A stretch of DNA of 32,000 nt. Source: Zygophlyctis sp. KS116. Taxonomy: Eukaryota > Fungi > Chytridiomycota. The notes under the pieces are model-generated. The model worked only from the letters and a program-made list of their open reading frames with translations. It was not told the origin of the DNA and did not search any database. A program made the position numbers and the translations under genes. The stretch's first letter is position 1; each line of letters opens with the position of its first letter. Below are positions 1-22,894 of the stretch, in pieces. Where the stretch lies: NCBI GenBank assembly GCA_054661495.1, contig BAAFSQ010000018.1, forward strand, positions 1 through 32,000. The letters run 5' to 3'.

Positions 1-98
1 AATTGGATGAAGATAAATCACGGCTATAGGAAAGAAGAGGTTTTTCCACTTTTTAGTTATTTTCGATCTAAAACTAAAGATCGATATAACTAGGTACT

Positions 99-160
99 GG
101 TACAGAAACCGGACCATTAACCGTTCATGATATCGTTATGAAAAATGGAACGCTTTGGAA
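99..160 (+). pseudogene. Relic fragment of a duplicated Reeler-domain gene
   Basis: 99-160 aligns without gaps to 947-1008 of the neighbouring gene (52/62 identical by hand count; GTETGPLTVHDIVMKNGTLWK vs GTETGSLTVNAIIMKDGAVWN). I see no intact surrounding ORF. Confidence 0.7.
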
Positions 161-3373: not shown

Positions 3374-5321
3374 TTATTCTTGAACCGATCGCACATTCAA
3401 AACTGATATCTTTCCAGGGGTTTGAAGCTTTCGCAAGCCATTTGAGAATGAATTTACAAATAAATCAGCATCATTCTCTGATACCGCTGTTTTATCATAC
3501 GCAATCATTATAGACATGTTACCTCCAAGAGTAATCACTCCAAGTGTAAAAAGTCCCCGTGCTCTAGTAATAAATTATAAACTAATTTACCCATCAAAGG
3601 AAGAATTAATAATGCCACCAAATTTATCAAGCCGTAATCGCATGTCATCTTCAGGAGAATTAGGAGTTGCAGTTGGAGCGTCCCATGCACCCAAGTTTGC
3701 CAATTCCACTGAAAACTGTCTTGAAAGTTTATCTAATTGAACTCTTTTCTTGATAAAATTAAATAATTTTGGCCGTCTGTAAATATAATTCGCAAACTTT
3801 AGCCTTGTTAAAGAAGTTCTGAAGCTAGTAATAATTCCTCTTCTCACAGTCCTACTTCGCTCCCAAAAATCATGCTTGTCACAGAGCTTTAGACTAGCAT
3901 TTGCCAAAGATCCAGCATACCCTCCAAAAACATTTACTGAAGGGTCTGTTTGTTTATCTGCTCCGTATAATAGTTTTGAATTAGGGAGGAGATGCCGCAT
4001 TGAATTGGTGACAACCCATCCCTGTCTAGCAGGAAACGTTTTTTTCTTGTATTTTTTAACATTACTAAATGCAGTTCGAACAGCAGACAATGCCAAAACT
4101 ACTAAAACAGCTGCAATAGTAGTTCCTTCTTTTTTAGAATTTTTACGAAGCGTAGATACAAACTGCTCATCAAAGAATAAAAACCGTGTTGAAGTTAATC
4201 TTTGATTTTGTTCAGCGTTTGTATCAGAATGTTCAGGGCTTTCAGACTCAATAACATCAATATCATCATAAGATCCAATATTATCATCTTCTAATTCCCT
4301 CTCTTTTCTTCCTTTATACCTTTTATGTCTCTTCTTTGATATAGCCCCAGCAATCATTCCAAAAGCAGCTAAAATTTAAAAAAAAACTAAATACCAGGTA
4401 AAATCTCAAAAAACCCAGGATTCATTAAATTATCTAGAATAGGAGGAGGCGAATCTGCCAAAACCACTTTTTCTAGCCCCAAATTCTGATCTAAATCCCA
4501 AAAACGCTTATCCATAAATTTCATAAATGTTCTTGCAAAAGCCCACATTGATAATCCATCTCCCAAACAATGATGAAAAGAAAAAGCAATTTCAAACTTT
4601 TCATAATTACAACTAGTTTCTTGTATTGGAGTTGAAGTCAAAGACTGATCAACTTCTTCCAAGACTGTATTTGGGTCATTTGAATCTAGTTTTTTATGAA
4701 AATCACCACTTTTTCCTAAATATTCTTGATATTCCTTTGCTTTTTCTACAGATGCAACAATAGCAACTTTCCACAATGGCCTTTTCCCTTCCAACTTAAA
4801 ATTTGTATTTAATTCTTTTCTTAAAACCGCCTCATAAGTCTTTTCATCTACTTTTCTGGGCACTATTTTGACTAAAAGAGGTAAATTAGCGGCATTAAAC
4901 GCTAAAGGTTCAAACGTTTTTGAATCTGGATTGATACTACAACATAATCTATAATGTTCCGCTGCTGCTAATTTAACCAAATCAATTATTCTTGCGACAG
5001 ATGTTGATTGATTTGGGGGTGTAAGCAATCTCATCCAAATAGACATTATAACCTGTGGTTTATCAGCTGGCGATGAGTAAAAGTAAGTTTCAGGAATAGA
5101 TAAACCATTGATTGGAGTAATCGGTTTTAGAGATTTTCCTTTTTTCAAAAGTCCGGTTGCCCAAAGCATAGACGGCCGTCTCTAATATTAAACTAACAAA
5201 TTACAGAAATGGATGCTGCTTGTGTTGCATTCGTTTCGGCTGATGTTTCTGACTTTTCAGGAATGGATGCTGATGTATGGGTTGCTGGCTCAATAGGCTC
5301 CGCAGCTGCCTCTTTCGTCAT
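3374..5321 (-). CDS. Stand-alone condensation-domain / alcohol-acetyltransferase-like CoA-dependent acyltransferase (introns 5182-5204, 4369-4394, 3564-3590)
   Basis: HHxxxDG motif (FHHCLGDGLS), ELNTNF...PLWKV and SKKEGTTIAAVL. Introns of 23, 26 and 27 nt give one frame from ATG 5321 to TAA 3374. Confidence 0.8.
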
Positions 5322-13680: not shown

Positions 13681-14620
13681 ATGTCAAAAAAGCTCTGGGT
13701 TGCATATGAAGCGCTTGCAAAGAGATTTATTGACAAAGTCTCCATTGAAGGATGCTCTGATGTGGCTGACTTTAAAGGTACTATTGGCAATTTAAACTAA
13801 TTTTCTAGATGAAATAAAAAAAAAGTTTGAAATCAGTGGGCCTGCATCTCATCTCTCTCTCTACAAATCTGATGGAACTACTGAAATTGATGTTGGAGAA
13901 TCTCCTTCTTTATTTGTGAATGTAAATTCTAGAGGAAATCCTCTCATTGTTAAACCTGTGGTCTCCTCTCAAGTCTCTAGTCTTCAAAACAATTTTTCCT
14001 CAAAAGTTTCCATGGTTTTGCAATCCACCATGACGACTGAGGAAAAAGAATCTATCTTGAAGGATATTTTTGAAGTACAATCCAAAGACAAACTGCTACA
14101 ATCTAAAGATGAATCACTACAATCTAAAGATGAATCACTACAATCTAAAGATGGTTTACTTGTAGCATTGGAAAGGGAAACGCTAGGCATCAAAGCAGAG
14201 CGTGATTTTTTAAAGGGAACTTTGGATGCTCGTCATATTTTTGAAAATTACGAGGCCCGATTCAAGAAGCCGGATCCAAAAGGCCCAAAGCTTACAAGAG
14301 CGGCAAGGTGGGATCAGCATCTTAAGTTGAATCCAAACATCCTGAAAAAGTTTGAAGAGTGTAACCATGACGACAAGGAAATACTTTGGCCAAATAAAGC
14401 TGTAGAAATTTATCACGAGTTATGCAGAAACATTCATCAACGAACCATAGAAATTGGAAATGGAAAGTATATCGTGATGATTGAAAAAGCACTTCCTAAA
14501 ACTTCTTCTTGTTTTGTAAAGGTACTAGCTAAGGAATTGTACGGGGAAAGTGTTTCAGTTGAAGAAGATACATTTATATTGAGTGGAGATCCTTCAGAAA
14601 CGGAACCATCTTCTGTATAG
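13681..14620 (+). CDS. Crinkler (CRN)-like protein: ubiquitin-like header, coiled coil and unknown C-terminal domain (31-nt intron 13778-13808)
   Basis: Spliced N-terminus MSKKLWVAYE...KVSIEGCSDVADFKDEIKKKF...HLSLY...EIDVG...NSRGNPLIVK resembles CRN headers (V.DLK..IK, L.L[YF], terminal hydrophobic strand). It reads in frame into ORF 13916-14620. Confidence 0.7.
14096..14152 (+). repeat. 21-bp coding heptad repeat (LQSKDES, about 3 units)
   Basis: ctacaatctaaagatgaatca repeated. Confidence 0.9.
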
Positions 14621-14900: not shown

Positions 14901-15286
14901 CTTCAGCAGGAACTATCTCTCAAAGGTTCTGTACTGCACGCATTAGTAGTTTGCAGAAAAATTGTCAGAGTGTTGCGGCAAACAGACAATTATCCCTATG
15001 ATTCAAGTCCTATTGACTCTAGATTCACTGAATCAATGAAAGTTGGATTGTGGAACAATCAGACCATTTTGACTGCTACTAGTCAAGATTTCTTAACCTG
15101 GTTGTCCTATTGCGTAACGGTTTCACGAATAAAACAAGATTGACAATCCTGCATTTCATGATGAGTGGTAGCATCGAGGGAGGAATGCATTTTAAACATA
15201 ATCATTCCTTGATAAAATTACACAATTCAGTAGAGAGCGCCAACAGTGAAATGAGAACATACTCACCTAGGCCCATTAAATTTTCA

Positions 15287-16234
15287 ATGCAATTGTCAGA
15301 TCGTCAATTAGAATTGCTTAAATCACTCAGGAATGCTCCCTCTCAGACACTAGATGCAGATAATTTATTAAAGGAATTAGAGTACTGGACAATGAATGAG
15401 ATCATGCAAGAGATTAATGCATTATCAGGGACTTTTATTCAAGTTTTGACTGTCAAGGGGAAACCGGTCTTTAAGGCCTTGGATGATGATGAAGTTGAAA
15501 AGACTCTGGGAATGTCGGAATCAGAGCGAATCATTTATAATATTATCAAATCTGCTAATAACAAGGGGATTTGGATTAAGGATATAAAATCAAAATCCAA
15601 TCTTCATACACAATTAGTCAACTCAAATATTAAAGCTTTAGAGAAAAAGGGAATTATTAAATCAGTAAAATCAGTTAAAACTCCTACTAAAAAAGTCTAT
15701 ATGTTGACGGAATTAGAACCTTCAATTGAACTTACTGGTGGGGCTTGGTATACGGATCAGGAATTGGATGTAGAATTTATAGATCAATTATCAAATCAGT
15801 TATACAAATTCATCGCGTCAAAGAGTTTTCCTCTAGATTCAAAGGATGCCATATATCCAGCAAACTATAAAGGATATCCAACAATAGAAGTATTACATAA
15901 ATGGATTAGGAAATCAGGGATCACTTCTATAGAGTTATCTTTTGAAGATGTGGCTTGTTTATTAGATAGGTTAGTTTATGATGGAAAAGTTGTTAAACTT
16001 GAAAGGCAGGATTTTTCTCATACAATGGATGAAGACTCTGAAGATGAAACAAGAAAAGATATGAGTCATTTAATGTGGATGTTTAAAGCTACCAAATATA
16101 TACGTGATAATGGTAACTCCTATTCAGATATACCATGTGGAAGTTGTCCGGTTTTTGAATTTTGTAAACAAGGCGGACCAGTTAACCCAGAAGAATGTGT
16201 TTATTTAAGTAGCTGGTTAGCCCAAGACTTTTAG
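15287..16234 (+). CDS. RPC34: RNA polymerase III subunit RPC34/RPC6
   Basis: NKGIWIKDIK, LEKKGIIKSVKSV, KKVYML.ELEPS.ELTGGAWY and the C-terminal Fe-S motif PCGSCPVFEFC...PEECVY. Start placed at ATG 15287. Confidence 0.95.
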   Translation: MQLSDRQLELLKSLRNAPSQTLDADNLLKELEYWTMNEIMQEINALSGTFIQVLTVKGKPVFKALDDDEVEKTLGMSESERIIYNIIKSANNKGIWIKDIKSKSNLHTQLVNSNIKALEKKGIIKSVKSVKTPTKKVYMLTELEPSIELTGGAWYTDQELDVEFIDQLSNQLYKFIASKSFPLDSKDAIYPANYKGYPTIEVLHKWIRKSGITSIELSFEDVACLLDRLVYDGKVVKLERQDFSHTMDEDSEDETRKDMSHLMWMFKATKYIRDNGNSYSDIPCGSCPVFEFCKQGGPVNPEECVYLSSWLAQDF

Positions 16235-16236
16235 AG

Positions 16237-17898
16237 TTACTCGAAGTTTTCTTCATGAAAGGAGAATACGATATTTTTTGATGAAGAAAGTTTAGCTTGT
16301 TTCTTTACTGCTTTTCCCATGACTGGAGGTCCACAAAAATATATTCCTATATCATTTACAGAAGATGGATCTGGAGTAATTTCACTCTTTATACAATCAA
16401 ATAATTTGTCCCATTGAGGTCGTCCAATCAGTGTTTTACTTTTGAGTTGAGTTATTGGATCAAAATCTTTTGAATCGTTTAGCATAATATTTGTTAAACT
16501 TTCAACGCCCATTTTACCAGTCAGAAAAATCCTACTCTGAACAAATGATTCTGGCACATGTTCCTCTAAATAATATAGAAGACTTTGAAACCAAGCGATA
16601 TCCTGCATATCACGGCAAACCCAAATTAAATGTAATTTCTCCAATTTCATTGGTGCTTTACGCATATAAGCATACCATATAGCTTTTAAAAGACCAGCAG
16701 ATGGAGTTACACCAATCCCAGCACTTATAAGTACTGAAGTTTTGTGAGTAAACAAATCTTGCGCCGGTGCACCATACGGCCCATCAATTCTTATACTTGG
16801 AAATCCCACATTTTCACCCTTTTCTGAATTTTCTTTTGAAACTAGATCATAGAGTGCATTCGTCCAATCCCCAACAACTTTTACATGAATAGACGAGAAC
16901 CCTTCCTGTGGAGTAGAAGAAATTGTAAATGGATGCCATTGAAACTTTGAAATTTCTGGAATATTTACATATAAATATTGTCCAGGATTATAATTCATTG
17001 AAAACTTTTCAAACCGTATTTCAATGACTTTGCCGGGATGTAGAATAACATCACTAATATTTGTATCTTCTCTTGATCTCCAAACTCTTATCAGTCTATC
17101 CAAAAGAAAAATGAAAAATGCAGGAGTTATGTAATACTTTGTGTTATAGCCCTTACATTGCCCATCGGGTGAATGAAACAAACATCCAAAGGAATGTAAG
17201 AATAGGCAAATATAAAATATCACATACAAATGATGAGTATGTATGAATATTTCAAATTTAAGTTTCCTAACCAACTTTGCAGCAGTAGTAAACATGAAGA
17301 ATATCACATACACCATTACATGTCCGGTAATCCCCGCAAATGATTCATAATGCAATCCCCATGTTGTAGCAGAAGTTAGCGTTGAATAATTTTTCCTGAA
17401 CTGTTCCTGGTTTTTCGATCCTGATAGATAATTTTGAAAATGGCCTGGTAACTTAAACATATTGGCGTAATGACCATCTTTCATTAGGTAAATCAAGCTT
17501 ACTTATATGCAGCAAAGTAAAAAATAACATTGAGTAAGCAGTAACTTTATGCAGAAAAATGTTATTATCCAAAGGAAGCCATGCATTTACTATCGGCGAT
17601 CGGACAACTCTTATAAGATTTCGGCAAGTAGGAAGCCTTGGTAATTAGTTTAAAAAACTTACAATAACAATGTACAGTCAAAGCATAAAACCAATCCGGC
17701 AGCTCTTGAAAGTAGAACCGAATTCCCGATGGAGTTATAAGCTTCCATCTCTGAATCATTCTTTTGCTTGAACCATCCAAAGGTAAATAGTGCAACATGG
17801 ATGCAAACATACAGAATCCAAAATACAAATGATCGGACAGTGCTGGAAAAGTAGTCTTGGAAATGCACTTGCAGAACAGGATCAATCTTTTCAAACAT
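16237..17898 (-). CDS. noxA: NADPH oxidase catalytic subunit, NoxA/Nox1 (gp91phox-like), about 536 aa; introns 17637-17662 and 17478-17502
   Basis: Spliced SRAAGLVL..LLLLPTCRNL; heme His pairs FLHKVTAYSMLFFTLLH and HTHHLYVIFYICLFLH; FAD motifs WHPFTISS and IDGPYGAP; NADPH motifs AGIGVTP, YFCGP and HEENF. No EF-hands and no long N-terminal extension. Confidence 0.95.
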
Positions 17899-17963
17899 AC
17901 CTATGAACTATAAATAGATCTCGCTTAATATAGAACGCAGAATCTATAAATAGATCTGGTAAA
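17899..17963. promoter_or_regulatory. 65-bp bidirectional promoter with two exact CTATAAATAGATCT copies (MEF2/Rlm1-type core)
   Basis: 14-mer at 17908-17921 and 17944-17957, with near-match CTTAATATAG at 17924-17933 between them. Confidence 0.7.
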
Positions 17964-18977
17964 ATGGCTAATGTCAATCAACTAAGCCAATGGAATGCAG
18001 CTCATAATGAATTTCTGAATAAAAATTATGCAAAGGCATTGGAAGTATATGAAGGAATCAGCCACTTATCCAGGATTTCATTCAATATGGGCTCAATATA
18101 TTGTTTATTGACTGATTATGAAAATGCTATTAAATGTTTTACTAAATCTATTCTATCGGATGAATATCAACTAGTATCTTTATTTCAAAGAGGGAATTTA
18201 TACTTTTCCATGTCGGTACTTGATATGGCAGTTCAGGATTATACAAGGATGTTGGAAATATTACATGATGATTGCAACTATTCTCAAATAGGATTGGAAT
18301 ATAAATTATACATAGCAGAAGTACTATTTAATAGGGCGCTATGTTATCTTGGGCTTGAAGAAAGAGAAAAGGCTCAACAAGATTTAATTGATGCGAACTC
18401 TGCAGCCTTTTTAAATATTCATTACAAAAGTATAGAACAAGTAGGATTTTATTCTCAAATCTTTATGATGAAAAGTGGGATTCAGTTTACTATTCCAAGT
18501 TATAAAACAGAAAATCTATCTGCAAAAACATATTTACAAAATGCAAAATCTATCCGAGGAACAGAATCTAATTTCTTGGGATTTATTGGATCTGCTCCAA
18601 TGCTTCCTAAAAATGTATTTTTTACAGGATCTAGAGGAAAAAGTGTTTTCCGAAAGTCTATATCTGCACCTGGATTATCTGGATTATCTGGATTATCTAA
18701 TGTTTCTAAAAATCTTGAACCAAATCAACCTGAATCAAATCAAAATGAATTAAGAGAAATATATGTCCCAACTCTTCTGGACAAGACTGGAACTATTCAA
18801 GTCAACTCAAAATCTTTGGGATTCTTCAAAACTAGACAAAAAGCTGAAGAGGCTTGTAAAAATTATATACTCTCTTCTCTAGGAGATAATGACGCTGCCT
18901 CAAATGTAGATTGGTTTGAAAAAGGGTGGGAGTATGGTGGACTTCAACTCTATATACAAATTCAAAAAATCTGTTGA
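17964..18977 (+). CDS. noxR: NADPH oxidase regulator NoxR (p67phox-like TPR plus activation domain)
   Basis: SRISFNMG, DEYQLVSLFQRG, NYSQIGLEYKLYIAEVLFNRALCY and KTENLSAKTYLQNAKSI correspond to NoxR/p67phox SKILFN.G, D.YLAVAYFQ.G, DY.QLGL.FKLY..EVLFNRGLCY and KVKNLK.KDYLGKA. Confidence 0.9.
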   Translation: MANVNQLSQWNAAHNEFLNKNYAKALEVYEGISHLSRISFNMGSIYCLLTDYENAIKCFTKSILSDEYQLVSLFQRGNLYFSMSVLDMAVQDYTRMLEILHDDCNYSQIGLEYKLYIAEVLFNRALCYLGLEEREKAQQDLIDANSAAFLNIHYKSIEQVGFYSQIFMMKSGIQFTIPSYKTENLSAKTYLQNAKSIRGTESNFLGFIGSAPMLPKNVFFTGSRGKSVFRKSISAPGLSGLSGLSNVSKNLEPNQPESNQNELREIYVPTLLDKTGTIQVNSKSLGFFKTRQKAEEACKNYILSSLGDNDAASNVDWFEKGWEYGGLQLYIQIQKIC

Positions 18978-19054
18978 AATTCATTATTCCAAATAAAAAC
19001 GATCCACATTTATTCATGTCCAAAATTGCCGTGAATTTGTCTATTTTTATGATT

Positions 19055-19068
19055 CTATTTATAGATCT
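19055..19068. promoter_or_regulatory. CTATTTATAGATCT element 4 bp upstream of the noxD-like ATG
   Basis: Same CTA(W)4TAG core (reverse complement of CTATAAATAG) and same ATCT flank as in the noxA/noxR promoter; near-match CTATTTTTAT at 19041. Confidence 0.6.
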
Positions 19069-19072
19069 TTAA

Positions 19073-19469
19073 ATGAAAGAATCAGCTCTTTTAGTGCTTG
19101 CAAGAGTTCAAGCATACACAACTGCCTTTGGTAAGATTCTCAAGACTAAAGATTACAGCATATCTAAATGGAGGAATTTATTCACTTTTCTATCAAAATC
19201 AAATCAATGAAAGCTCTGTATCTGATTTACTTGACAAGTTAAATTTTTTCCAACAGAGTGGTAAAATAGCAATTGCAGTAGCTATTCTAATCATCTTCAT
19301 TAATATCTATATACTAAAGAAAGATCCCTCTAAAACACTAAAGATTCTGGTAGGGATCTGCTATCTCATTCTCGGACTGATCAGTGTCTTTCAGTTCACC
19401 CTAACCCTCCCAGGCAGTTTCCTGCTATTTACTGCCATAACAATATTTATGACTATTCCTACAAAGTAA
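19073..19469 (+). CDS. noxD: Small multi-pass membrane protein resembling p22phox/NoxD (cytochrome b558 alpha), 122 aa; 28-nt intron 19131-19158
   Basis: Spliced N-terminus MKESALLVLARVQAYTTAFAYLNGGIYSLFY resembles p22phox [20 protein letters not shown] and NoxD WARLIVLTAA...AIEGFFW. It has 3-4 hydrophobic helices, a matching size, and sits next to noxA/noxR. The similarity is weak and judged by eye. Confidence 0.62.
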
Positions 19470-19563: not shown

Positions 19564-22500
19564 ATGAATTCGTCAAAAATCGCTCAAGACGAATTGAAAA
19601 ATGTCTTGTCAGAGACTGCAGAAGGAGAAGATCCACTTGAGGCTGCAATGCTACAAAGAAGAATAAATGATGCGTCTGATTCTTATAAAAATCAACGGAT
19701 CGGAAGGATGCTTTCTCCAGAAAGAAAAGATGCTTTTAATAAAGATGATGAGACTGCAAGATCTTATTCTCAAGTCATGAAAGAGCAAGAAATGGAAAAG
19801 GAAAAGCAGGCCGCACAAAGGAAAATTAATCAGGAAAAGAAGAGTGAATGGGAAGAAGATGAAGCGCCAGCGACTAAAAAGTCTAGATGGGATAAAACTC
19901 CAAGTTCAGCATGGGAAGGAACTCCTTCTAGGAAAAGTAGATGGGATCAGACTCCAGTAGGGAAATCTTTGGATGCAACTCCAGTCGGTTTATCAGGTGC
20001 ACAAACTCCAATGCCTCAAACTCCAAGATCTGAGATACGGTTAGATAGGGAAATGGAATACAGAAATAGGTACTTGACAGATCAAGAATTTAATGCAATG
20101 ATGCCAACAGAAGGGTATAAAATTATTGAAGCTCCAACTGGTTATGAAGTTCCTGCTAGAAAGTTAATGGCTACTCCTGCTCCGTTTGAAGGCGGTGAAG
20201 ATGGGTTTAATATGCAAGAAGATGGTAAGATGGATCAATAATTAAATTTTTAGGTACAATGGGAGAAGCTGCTGGTGTAGATGTAATACCGGAAATTCCA
20301 GGTGTAGAAGGACTTTCATTCTTTAAAAATGATGATATGAAGTACTTTGGAAAACTTATGGATGATTTAAAAGAGGATGATATGACGGCTGAAGATATGC
20401 GAGAAAGGAAAATTATGAGATTATTACTTAAAATTAAAAATGGTACACCTCCAATTAGGAAAGTTGCACTAAAGCTATTGACAGAAAAAGCTAGAGATTT
20501 TGGTGCAGGTCCATTATTTAATCAGATCTTGCCACTTTTAATGTCACCAACGTTGGAGGATCAAGAGCGGCATCTTTTGGTCAAGGTTATTGATAGAATT
20601 ATGTTTAAATTGGATGATTTGGTGCGTCCTTTTGCTCATAAAATTCTGGTTGTGATTGAACCATTGCTGATTGATGAAGATTATTATGCTCGAGTGGAAG
20701 GAAGAGAAATTATTTCAAATCTTTCAAAGGCTGCAGGTTTAGCAACAATGATTTCAGTAATGAGACCTGATATTGATCATCCTGATGAATATGTAAGAAA
20801 TACAACTGCTAGAGCTTTTTCTGTTGTTGCATCTGCATTAGGGATTCAAGCTTTATTGCCTTTTCTAAAAGCTGTTTGCAAGTCAAAAAAGTCATGGCAG
20901 GCTCGGCATACTGGAATTAAGATTGTTCAGCAGATAGCTATCCTTTTAGGTTGTGCAGTTCTCCCACATCTCAGAAATCTTGTTGAATCAATTGCACATG
21001 GTTTAGAAGATGAGCAACCAAAAGTCCGAACAATTACTGCTCTTGCTGTTTCTGCTCTTGCAGAGGCTTCTGCTCCCTATGGTATTGAATCTTTTGACCA
21101 AATACTTCGTCCATTATGGTCAGGAATAAAAAGACATAGAGGAAAAGGCTTGGCTGCATTTATCAAAGCAATTGGGTTTATTATTCCCTTGATGGATGAA
21201 GAATATGCAAACTATTATACAAAAGAAGTCATGACTATTCTTGTTCGTGAATTTCAAACCCCAGATGATGAAATGAAGAAAATTGTCTTGAAAGTTGTCA
21301 AACAATGTGTGGCAACTGAAGGAGTTGAAGGGAGCTATATTCGTAGAGAAATCATGCCAGAATTTTTTAGAAACTTTTGGGTGCGCCGAATGGCTCTGGA
21401 CCGAAGAAATTACCTTCAGCTTGTTGATGCTACTCTCGAAATCGCCCGGAAAGCAGGTGTTGCTGAAATTATCAACAAAATCATTGATGGACTAAAGGAT
21501 GAATCAGAACCTTTTAGGAGAATGGTGATAGAGGGGATCGACAAAATAGTGGGAGAACTTGGAACCGCTGATATTGATGATCGCATGCAAGAAGTTCTGA
21601 TAGATGGAATTTTATATGCCTTTCAAGAGCAAACTGCCGAAGATATTATCATTTTGAATGGATTTGGAACTGTAGTTAACAAATTTGGCCTACGTATCAA
21701 GCCCTATTTACCACAAATATGTTCGACAATTCTATGGAGGCTCAATAATAAAAGTGCAAGAGTGCGCCAACAGGCTGCAGATCTAGTTGCCAAGATTGCA
21801 GGTGTAATGAAAAGCTGTGAAGAAGAAAAGTTAATGGGCCATCTCGGCGTAGTTTTGTATGAATATTTAGGAGAAGAATATCCTGAAGTTCTTGGGTCAA
21901 TTCTGAAAGGGCTCAAGGCCATTGTAAATGTTGTAGGAATGTCAACAATGACCCCCCCTATCAAGGATCTTCTTCCTCGTTTAACACCAATTTTGAAGAA
22001 TCGTCATGAAAAAGTCCAGGAACATTGTATAGATCTGGTTGGTCGAATAGCAGATCGTGGTGCGGAATTTGTTTCCGCTAGAGAGTGGATGCGTATTTGT
22101 TTTGAACTTTTAGACATGTTAAAAGCGCATAAAAAGAGTATTCGTAGAGCCACAATCAACACTTTTGGATACATTGCTAAAGCTATTGGTCCCCAGGATG
22201 TTTTATCTACATTATTGAATAATCTCAAAGTTCAAGAGCGTCAAAATCGTGTTTGCACAACGATTGCTATTGCTATTGTTGCCGAAACCTGTGGTCCATT
22301 TACGGTTTTACCAGCTCTAATGAATGAATATCGCATCCCAGAAGGCAATGTCCAGAATGGTGTTCTAAAATCTTTGTCATTTATGTTTGAATATATTGGA
22401 GAGATGGGAAAAGATTATATTTATGCGTTAACACCTCTCTTGGAAGATGGATTAATTGACCGTGATATGATTCATCGTCAAACAGCTTGTTCAACTGTAA

Positions 22501-22894
22501 AACATATGGCCTTGGGAGGGGCTTTTCTTGGAGTTGAGGACGCTATCGGTCATCTTTTAAATGTTGTATTTCCAAATATTTTTGAGGTAATTTTTTACAA
22601 AATAAAAATATAAGATGGCTCCACACATTCAAAATGCTGTAACAGAGTGCCTTGAAGCTTTCAGACTCTGTCTAGGACCATCAGTGGTTCTAAACTACTT
22701 ATTGCAAGGACTTTTCCATCCTGCTAGAAAAGTGCGAGAAGCATATTGGAGGGTATTATTTGATTTAATTAATTTTTTAGAATTATAATAATCTTTATAT
22801 TGGTTCTCAGGATGCATTGGTCTGCTTTTTCCCAAAAATTGATGCTGATGAGAGAAATGACTATGCTCGGCATGAATTAGAAATGGTCATTTAA
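19564..22894 (+). CDS. SF3B1: U2 snRNP splicing factor SF3B1 (Hsh155/Prp10); introns 20225-20253, 22587-22614, 22753-22780
   Basis: RWD(K/Q)TP motifs, [55 protein letters not shown] and YIGSQDAL. Confidence 0.98.

Follow-up and report, generated by a model that had tools for sequence, protein, structure and literature searches.

Linked noxA, noxR, and p22phox/NoxD-Like Genes as a Probable NADPH Oxidase Module in a Chytrid Fungus

Are the genes for the catalytic subunit, the activator, and the small membrane subunit of an NADPH oxidase held together in a chytrid as one functional unit, or are they just neighbors? This question was raised by the window (G000:C18:1-32000), i.e., the whole analyzed stretch of 32,000 nucleotides, in which an initial annotation had placed a noxA gene, a noxR/p67phox homolog, and a small membrane gene (gene 3) side by side and had read them as a dedicated, co-regulated, and possibly co-inherited module. 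The adjacency was borne out and the coordinates of all three genes held on re-derivation, with noxA and noxR head-to-head at an ATG-to-ATG distance of 65 bp and the ATG of gene 3 situated 95 bp past the noxR stop codon. A rough estimate put the chance of three such genes adjoining at ~3e-7 (~6,700 genes) and the trio moreover recurs. The locus probably represents a co-regulated module for a NoxA oxidase, in which NoxA and the small subunit would form the membrane core and NoxR with Rac the switch, producing superoxide at a developmental step. The host of the module is a chytrid fungus, the best named matches of NoxA being chytrid proteins (43-48% identity). The 12.7 Mb assembly containing the window is gene-dense with introns of 25-30 nt, and the sole public run containing the stretch was a freshwater metatranscriptome library.

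Subunit genes of the window

Spliced gene models were searched exon by exon and the joined products of noxA and gene 3 were checked for an open frame. On the minus strand, noxA extends from the ATG at 17898 to the stop codon at 16237 and gives a 536-aa frame after two predicted GT-AG introns that were picked for GTAAG donors and typical size, other GT-AG pairs also leaving the frame open. Exon 1 (17663..17898) is followed by intron 1 (17637..17662; 26 nt), which has a same-place counterpart in the relative L017, exon 2 (17503..17636) with the first heme-ligating histidine pair, intron 2 (17478..17502; 25 nt), and exon 3 (16237..17477) with the second histidine pair, the FAD- and NADPH-binding domains, and the stop codon. 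Pfam matches to PF01794, PF08022, and PF08030 were identified and human NOX2 was the top PDB match (E 1.6e-78). Alignment to NOX2 recovered all four heme ligands (equivalents of H101/H115 and H209/H222; the exon 2 pair is H-x13-H and the exon 3 pair H-x12-H) together with the motifs HPFT and GxGxxP and a C-terminal Phe, and an EF-hand extension was absent. NoxA looks catalytically intact and would be expected to generate superoxide. The trees quoted here for Nox, NoxR, and the small subunit were quick trees, that of Nox lacking NoxB or ferric-reductase reference rows; it displayed a chytrid Nox clade (support 99) beside Dikarya NoxA, with the window protein in a fast-evolving clade of metagenome sequences within the chytrid NoxA group, adjoining Rhizophydiales (support 84).

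The intronless noxR gene (17964..18977, plus strand) encodes a 337-aa p67phox homolog with N-terminal tetratricopeptide repeats (TPRs), a degenerate activation segment, and a C-terminal domain other than PB1. Its top natural PDB match was p67phox (NCF2; E 1.4e-20, residues 3-215), to which the N-terminal TPR domain is homologous, and it keeps the TPR region along with Ser37, Asp67, and the Tyr-Leu core of its activation segment. Identity with the L017 NoxR was 46% over 263 aa and the C-terminal ~78 aa (window 18741-18974), which had no Pfam match and are not PB1, were conserved in L017. The window protein is classed as a divergent homolog and not a canonical NoxR. Homologs of Rac, Cdc42, and Cdc24 were identified on other contigs of the assembly.

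Gene 3 runs on the plus strand from the ATG at 19073 to the stop codon at 19469 and encodes 122 aa after a predicted 28-nt phase-1 intron (19131..19158), the position of which is common to its homologs in L017, Batrachochytrium, and a second cluster of the same genome (C90, below). Exon 1 (19073..19130) was 71% identical to that of L017 over 17 aa, and exon 2 (19159..19469) encodes three hydrophobic helices and the stop codon. The whole protein was 51% identical to that of L017 with a pattern of synonymous change; in exon 2, identity by codon position was 0.64/0.84/0.45 and 24 of 51 identical residues were on synonymous codons, and because of this pattern gene 3 is taken from the alignment to be a real coding gene. 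Across the assembly it had exactly one paralog, which lies on C90 (33% identity, E 2e-10, same intron position).

The identity of gene 3 was reached through named chytrids. A word search with exon 2 found no homologs, and the DUF6064 family of bacteria, proposed for exon 2 by Atlas, was rejected for low recognition. A profile built from the lineage alone retrieved, among 24,629 pieces, the small noxA-adjoining genes of Polychytrium (E 8e-9), Terramyces (4e-7), and Batrachochytrium (1e-6). The Terramyces and Polychytrium orthologs had weak, below cut-off matches to DUF7727, a family also matched by the Boothiomyces member, and the complete family profile aligned with ascomycete DUF7727 over ~115 columns (hhalign probability 69-85%, E 5e-5 to 6e-6). 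The lineage-only profile was not significant against ascomycete DUF7727 (probability 0.5%) and therefore the link needs the named chytrid intermediates. The sole PDB sequence matches of the family profile were to p22phox (weak, E 1.1); the ascomycete DUF7727 profile matched no PDB sequence, and exon 1 of the C90 small subunit gave nothing relevant against PDB. A model of the intronless Terramyces ortholog comprised four helices and had p22phox as its top match both in Foldseek (probability 1.0, E 0.017) and in VIA (human p22phox; Z 12.9, root-mean-square deviation 2.4, 106 residues). Gene 3 thus belongs to a chytrid family that is linked to DUF7727 and p22phox-shaped, and it is very probably a p22phox/NoxD homolog. 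DUF7727 itself we take to be the NoxD/Pro41 family from NoxD sequences, similar size, and the fold match, and not from a named database entry. The size of one such protein, FgNoxD, is 146 aa (PMC8928025). Two tandem near-identical small-subunit copies were observed upstream of noxA in Terramyces (L024:2-481, 832-1323), and Boothiomyces has two copies with consecutive locus tags.

Contigs of the RNA library mapped to noxA, noxR, and gene 3, one of them spanning noxA intron 1 unspliced and none with a splice joint. Splice-junction support in the reads was found for none of the predicted introns (one run, assembled contigs) and, given their unspliced state, the contigs on the trio may be DNA.

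Linkage, duplication, and candidate regulation

The trio was identified in the window, C90, the relatives L017 and L020, Batrachochytrium, Gorgonomyces, Terramyces, and Polychytrium, in five orders or orientations. With noxA (A) drawn forward, noxR as R, and the small subunit as D, the arrangement is D(-) R(-) A(+) in the window and L017, R(-) R(-) D(+) R(-) A(+) in C90, R(-) D(+) A(+) in L020, Gorgonomyces, and Polychytrium, R(-) D(-) A(+) in Batrachochytrium, and D D A in Terramyces with R ~6 kb downstream. Linkage was accordingly kept despite rearrangement in Rhizophydiales, Polychytriales, and metagenome relatives.

The initial annotation presumed that Nox genes are unlinked in model filamentous fungi, a premise contradicted by a Nox-anchored metagenome scan that was aimed at chytrid loci and returned mostly ascomycetes plus one close relative. 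Its ascomycete loci (L072, L082, and L090-L137, taken from the top of a ranked list and not at random; one falls in a cluster named from Neophaeococcomyces/Knufia) displayed a DUF7727 (NoxD-type) gene head-to-head upstream of noxA in 27 of the 32 with enough flank, or 20 of 23 distinct ones, and no noxR was present near noxA within the fetched flank of those loci. This shows that the noxA-NoxD pairing is widespread and that linkage is not confined to chytrids; within the loci sampled, only the three-gene form with noxR added is chytrid-specific.

The second trio of the genome (G000:C90 987-6839; L010) comprises noxA2, noxR1, the small subunit (inverted), noxR2, and noxR3. Its first two NoxR copies share a near-identical PB1-like C-terminus and the second and third a near-identical N-terminus. 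Within the assembly, every clear noxR-like or gene-3-like gene falls inside one of the two clusters. A third, distant Nox/ferric-reductase-like gene (G000:C285 30-1439; L012) is on a long branch with 34-36% identity, its 3' end running off the contig and no noxR or small subunit occurring within 8 kb upstream. The window and L017 copies clustered with those of C90, leaving out L020, in each of the trees of Nox, NoxR, and the small subunit (support 97, 84, and 82, respectively); because all three trees agree in this grouping, the data fit a single duplication of the whole module. The C90 copy is probably at the ancestral position, since its flanks (Vps10, a cNMP-binding gene, and fumarate reductase) are common to L020 and Batrachochytrium, and the window cluster is most likely a relocated copy of the older one. 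Reeler-like secreted-protein paralogs occur in the window (96-160 and 605-1675) and at the start of C90 (L010:1-793) with 87% DNA identity. As the order in L020 is noxA, Reeler, Pus10, the reversed C90 may abut the start of the window contig, which would place the two clusters ~17-20 kb apart.

The 65-bp noxA/noxR spacer (17899..17963) contains a perfect 14-nt direct repeat that includes CTA(A/T)4TAG, the MEF2/Rlm1 consensus (PMC3250504), with copies at 17908..17917 and 17944..17953, and a third box (19055..19064) ends 8 nt before the gene 3 ATG. Boxes of this type occurred in spacers of the window cluster, the C90 cluster, and two relatives. In the independent spacers, i.e., those not used to spot the motif, six were counted against 0.05 expected, an excess with P still ~5e-7 when fivefold the genomic rate (0.083 per kb) is assumed, and across these spacers the core letters vary and the flanks are constant. 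The sole MADS-box gene detected is of the MEF2 type (G000:C151; L140:1423-1716). A common MEF2-type box supports co-regulation of the trio as predicted from these motifs. Further boxes were observed at window 539, 576, 10994, and 27353, and at L010:883, two of them lying before the Reeler-like gene, which suggests a putative regulon wider than the trio.

By analogy with the NOX2/NoxA mechanism, NoxA and the small subunit would assemble in the membrane and NoxR with Rac-GTP, encoded elsewhere, would start the transfer of electrons from NADPH through FAD and two hemes to O2, yielding superoxide. A MEF2/Rlm1-type factor such as that encoded on C151 may bind the spacer boxes and activate the genes jointly, probably at a developmental or wall-remodeling step, for instance at encystment, at germination, or during penetration of the substrate. 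C90 would retain the ancestral position; the window copy would have relocated to its place between RPC34 and SF3B1, with the PB1 domain presumably lost from its NoxR.

Weighing the alternatives

Several observations weigh against a co-regulated module. Synteny in zoosporic fungi, as well as placing the trio in several relatives, found it missing from four other lineages, with no partner of noxA detected in a flank of 8-10 kb in Geranomyces, Cladochytrium (two loci), Quaeritorhiza, and Paraphysoderma. Because conservation next to the cluster extends, in some relatives, to neighbors such as Vps10, the cNMP-binding gene, and fumarate reductase, general inertia of gene order may account for part of the linkage, and the Reeler-like gene and Pus10 are partly conserved neighbors too. 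The MEF2-type box is lineage-specific because it was absent from the spacers of named chytrids and of ascomycetes. These points would suit true Nox subunits that stayed adjacent through inherited inertia rather than selected co-regulation, with an ordinary segmental duplication as the source of the second copy. Such an origin is nevertheless decidedly unlikely given that the trio stayed together through at least four reshufflings of order or orientation, that the window copy brought only these three genes into its new flanks, that the Polychytrium cluster has none of the tested flanks in common, and that the noxA-DUF7727 pair persists in ascomycetes.

Further counterevidence concerns the proteins themselves. 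In the window NoxR, Arg102 aligns to His beside a two-residue gap, Val204 aligns to Ser (as in L017), and PB1 had no Pfam match and an hhalign probability of 0.1% against chytrid PB1 domains, its place being taken by another conserved C-terminal domain; Val204 was kept in Batrachochytrium and Gorgonomyces, and the Gorgonomyces protein has PB1. In p67phox, Val204 has been reported as crucial and Asp67 and Arg102 as Rac-binding (PMC2121648), and the activation segment is even more degenerate in all three C90 copies. Because of the missing PB1 and the two substitutions, the activator role of the window NoxR is put forward as a prediction. The window oxidase may instead have been neofunctionalized or become partly activator-independent, the NoxR-like protein serving as a scaffold or inhibitor with no activation through the Val204 segment; this is rather unlikely in view of the retained TPR region, Ser37, Asp67, and Tyr-Leu core and of a noxR that is conserved in L017 and still linked to noxA, and it is compatible with the cluster being real. 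For gene 3, the claimed p22phox/NoxD likeness stood through named-chytrid intermediates, profile-profile match, and ortholog fold and not by direct match, as PF05038 and PF24853 (DUF7727) matched neither exon 2 nor anything genome-wide. The exon-2 model alone returned generic helical bundles, the Z of 12.9 is near a chance level that helical bundles can reach (next match, Z 10.4), and no structure exceeded a template modeling score of 0.5 when the Terramyces model was run through the Atlas fold search. A different small four-helix membrane protein of the TVP18/Cg6151-P or COPI-associated type, lying beside noxA by chance, was considered, and in Atlas the Polychytrium homolog scored 0.85 for Cg6151-P and COPI_assoc, just under 0.86 for DUF7727. 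This identity was rejected and is very improbable: a Cg6151-P gene distinct from gene 3 is present on C466 and scored only 4.6 bits against the gene 3 profiles, orthologs of gene 3 match DUF7727 and fold like p22phox, and both copies lie inside Nox clusters.

A co-regulated NoxA module thus remains the preferred account. The conserved linkage, the apparent duplication as a unit, and the MEF2-type box lend support to the dedicated and possibly co-inherited module of the initial annotation, while two of its supports were lost, namely the unlinked premise and the 65-bp spacing. The distance itself was correct but is not evidence for a module, because an unrelated UFD1-like/Nop25 pair in the window (9742/9807) is head-to-head at 64 bp and such gaps are ordinary in this genome. 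More tentatively, and with some doubt, the locus could exemplify an old, undescribed cluster that encodes an entire subunit-regulated NADPH oxidase, with the trio kept in several chytrid orders and the noxA-NoxD pair in many ascomycetes, here duplicated, under a MEF2-type regulon, and with a rewired PB1-less activator.

Flanking genes and comparison with known systems

The unrelated genes reported on either side were confirmed. RPC34 lies in an open frame (15110..16234, plus strand; true start inside; PF05158, E 3.5e-84) that ends 2 bp from the noxA stop codon, and an SF3B1-type HEAT-repeat gene, of which the first two exons span 19564..22613 (plus strand), starts 94 bp after gene 3 and was identified by Pfam search, including PF08920 on its L017 ortholog. 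Elsewhere in the window, a 234-aa open reading frame that lacks Pfam matches and carries a short SKDESLQ tandem repeat occupies 13916-14620, and two adjoining minus-strand frames at 3587-5169, one with a weak alcohol-acetyltransferase match (PF07247), are possibly one condensation-domain gene.

The subunits themselves are already known. A NoxD homolog in B. dendrobatidis was described by Lacaze et al. (2015; cited in PMC5309816) and is probably the gene adjoining noxA, so that the 2015 paper may already give the linkage; no report of the noxA/noxR/small-subunit linkage was found in the literature searched. Synteny offers a route to p22phox/NoxD subunits that profile searches miss, and a probable complete chytrid oxidase, including that of the amphibian pathogen B. 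dendrobatidis, can be named as one locus, bearing on the early organization, in animals and fungi, of the subunit-regulated NOX system. The locus provides a minimal three-gene set for reconstitution and natural NoxR variants for testing the need for Val204, Arg102, and PB1, as well as a candidate MEF2/Rlm1 link from wall-integrity signaling to the generation of reactive oxygen species in zoosporic fungi. Compared to known MEF2/Rlm1 regulons, the boxes share the exact consensus (PMC3250504) and a MEF2-type MADS-box gene is encoded on C151, the sites here being putative ones identified from sequence; no report of such a regulon for chytrid Nox genes was found in the literature.

The closest known system is the fungal NoxA (Nox1)-NoxD (Pro41/HAM-6)-NoxR-Rac complex, with the same three subunit types and with Rac and Cdc24 homologs likewise encoded elsewhere in this genome. 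It differs in that the three genes adjoin here and the set is duplicated, that the window NoxR lacks PB1 and the key Val/Leu, and that the small subunit is too divergent for DUF7727, whereas in the sampled ascomycetes only noxA and the DUF7727 gene are neighbors and never noxR. The human NOX2 complex (gp91phox/CYBB, p22phox/CYBA, and p67phox/NCF2) supplied the top PDB or fold match for NoxA, NoxR, and the gene 3 ortholog; unlike its human counterparts, gene 3 has no proline-rich tail and the window NoxR no SH3 domain. The genes of the human complex are on different chromosomes. As in fungal functional clusters and head-to-head subunit pairs, functionally coupled genes are linked and a cis-element is held in common. 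Most described fungal gene clusters encode metabolic pathways and, in contrast to these, the chytrid trio encodes the core of a signaling enzyme together with its activator.

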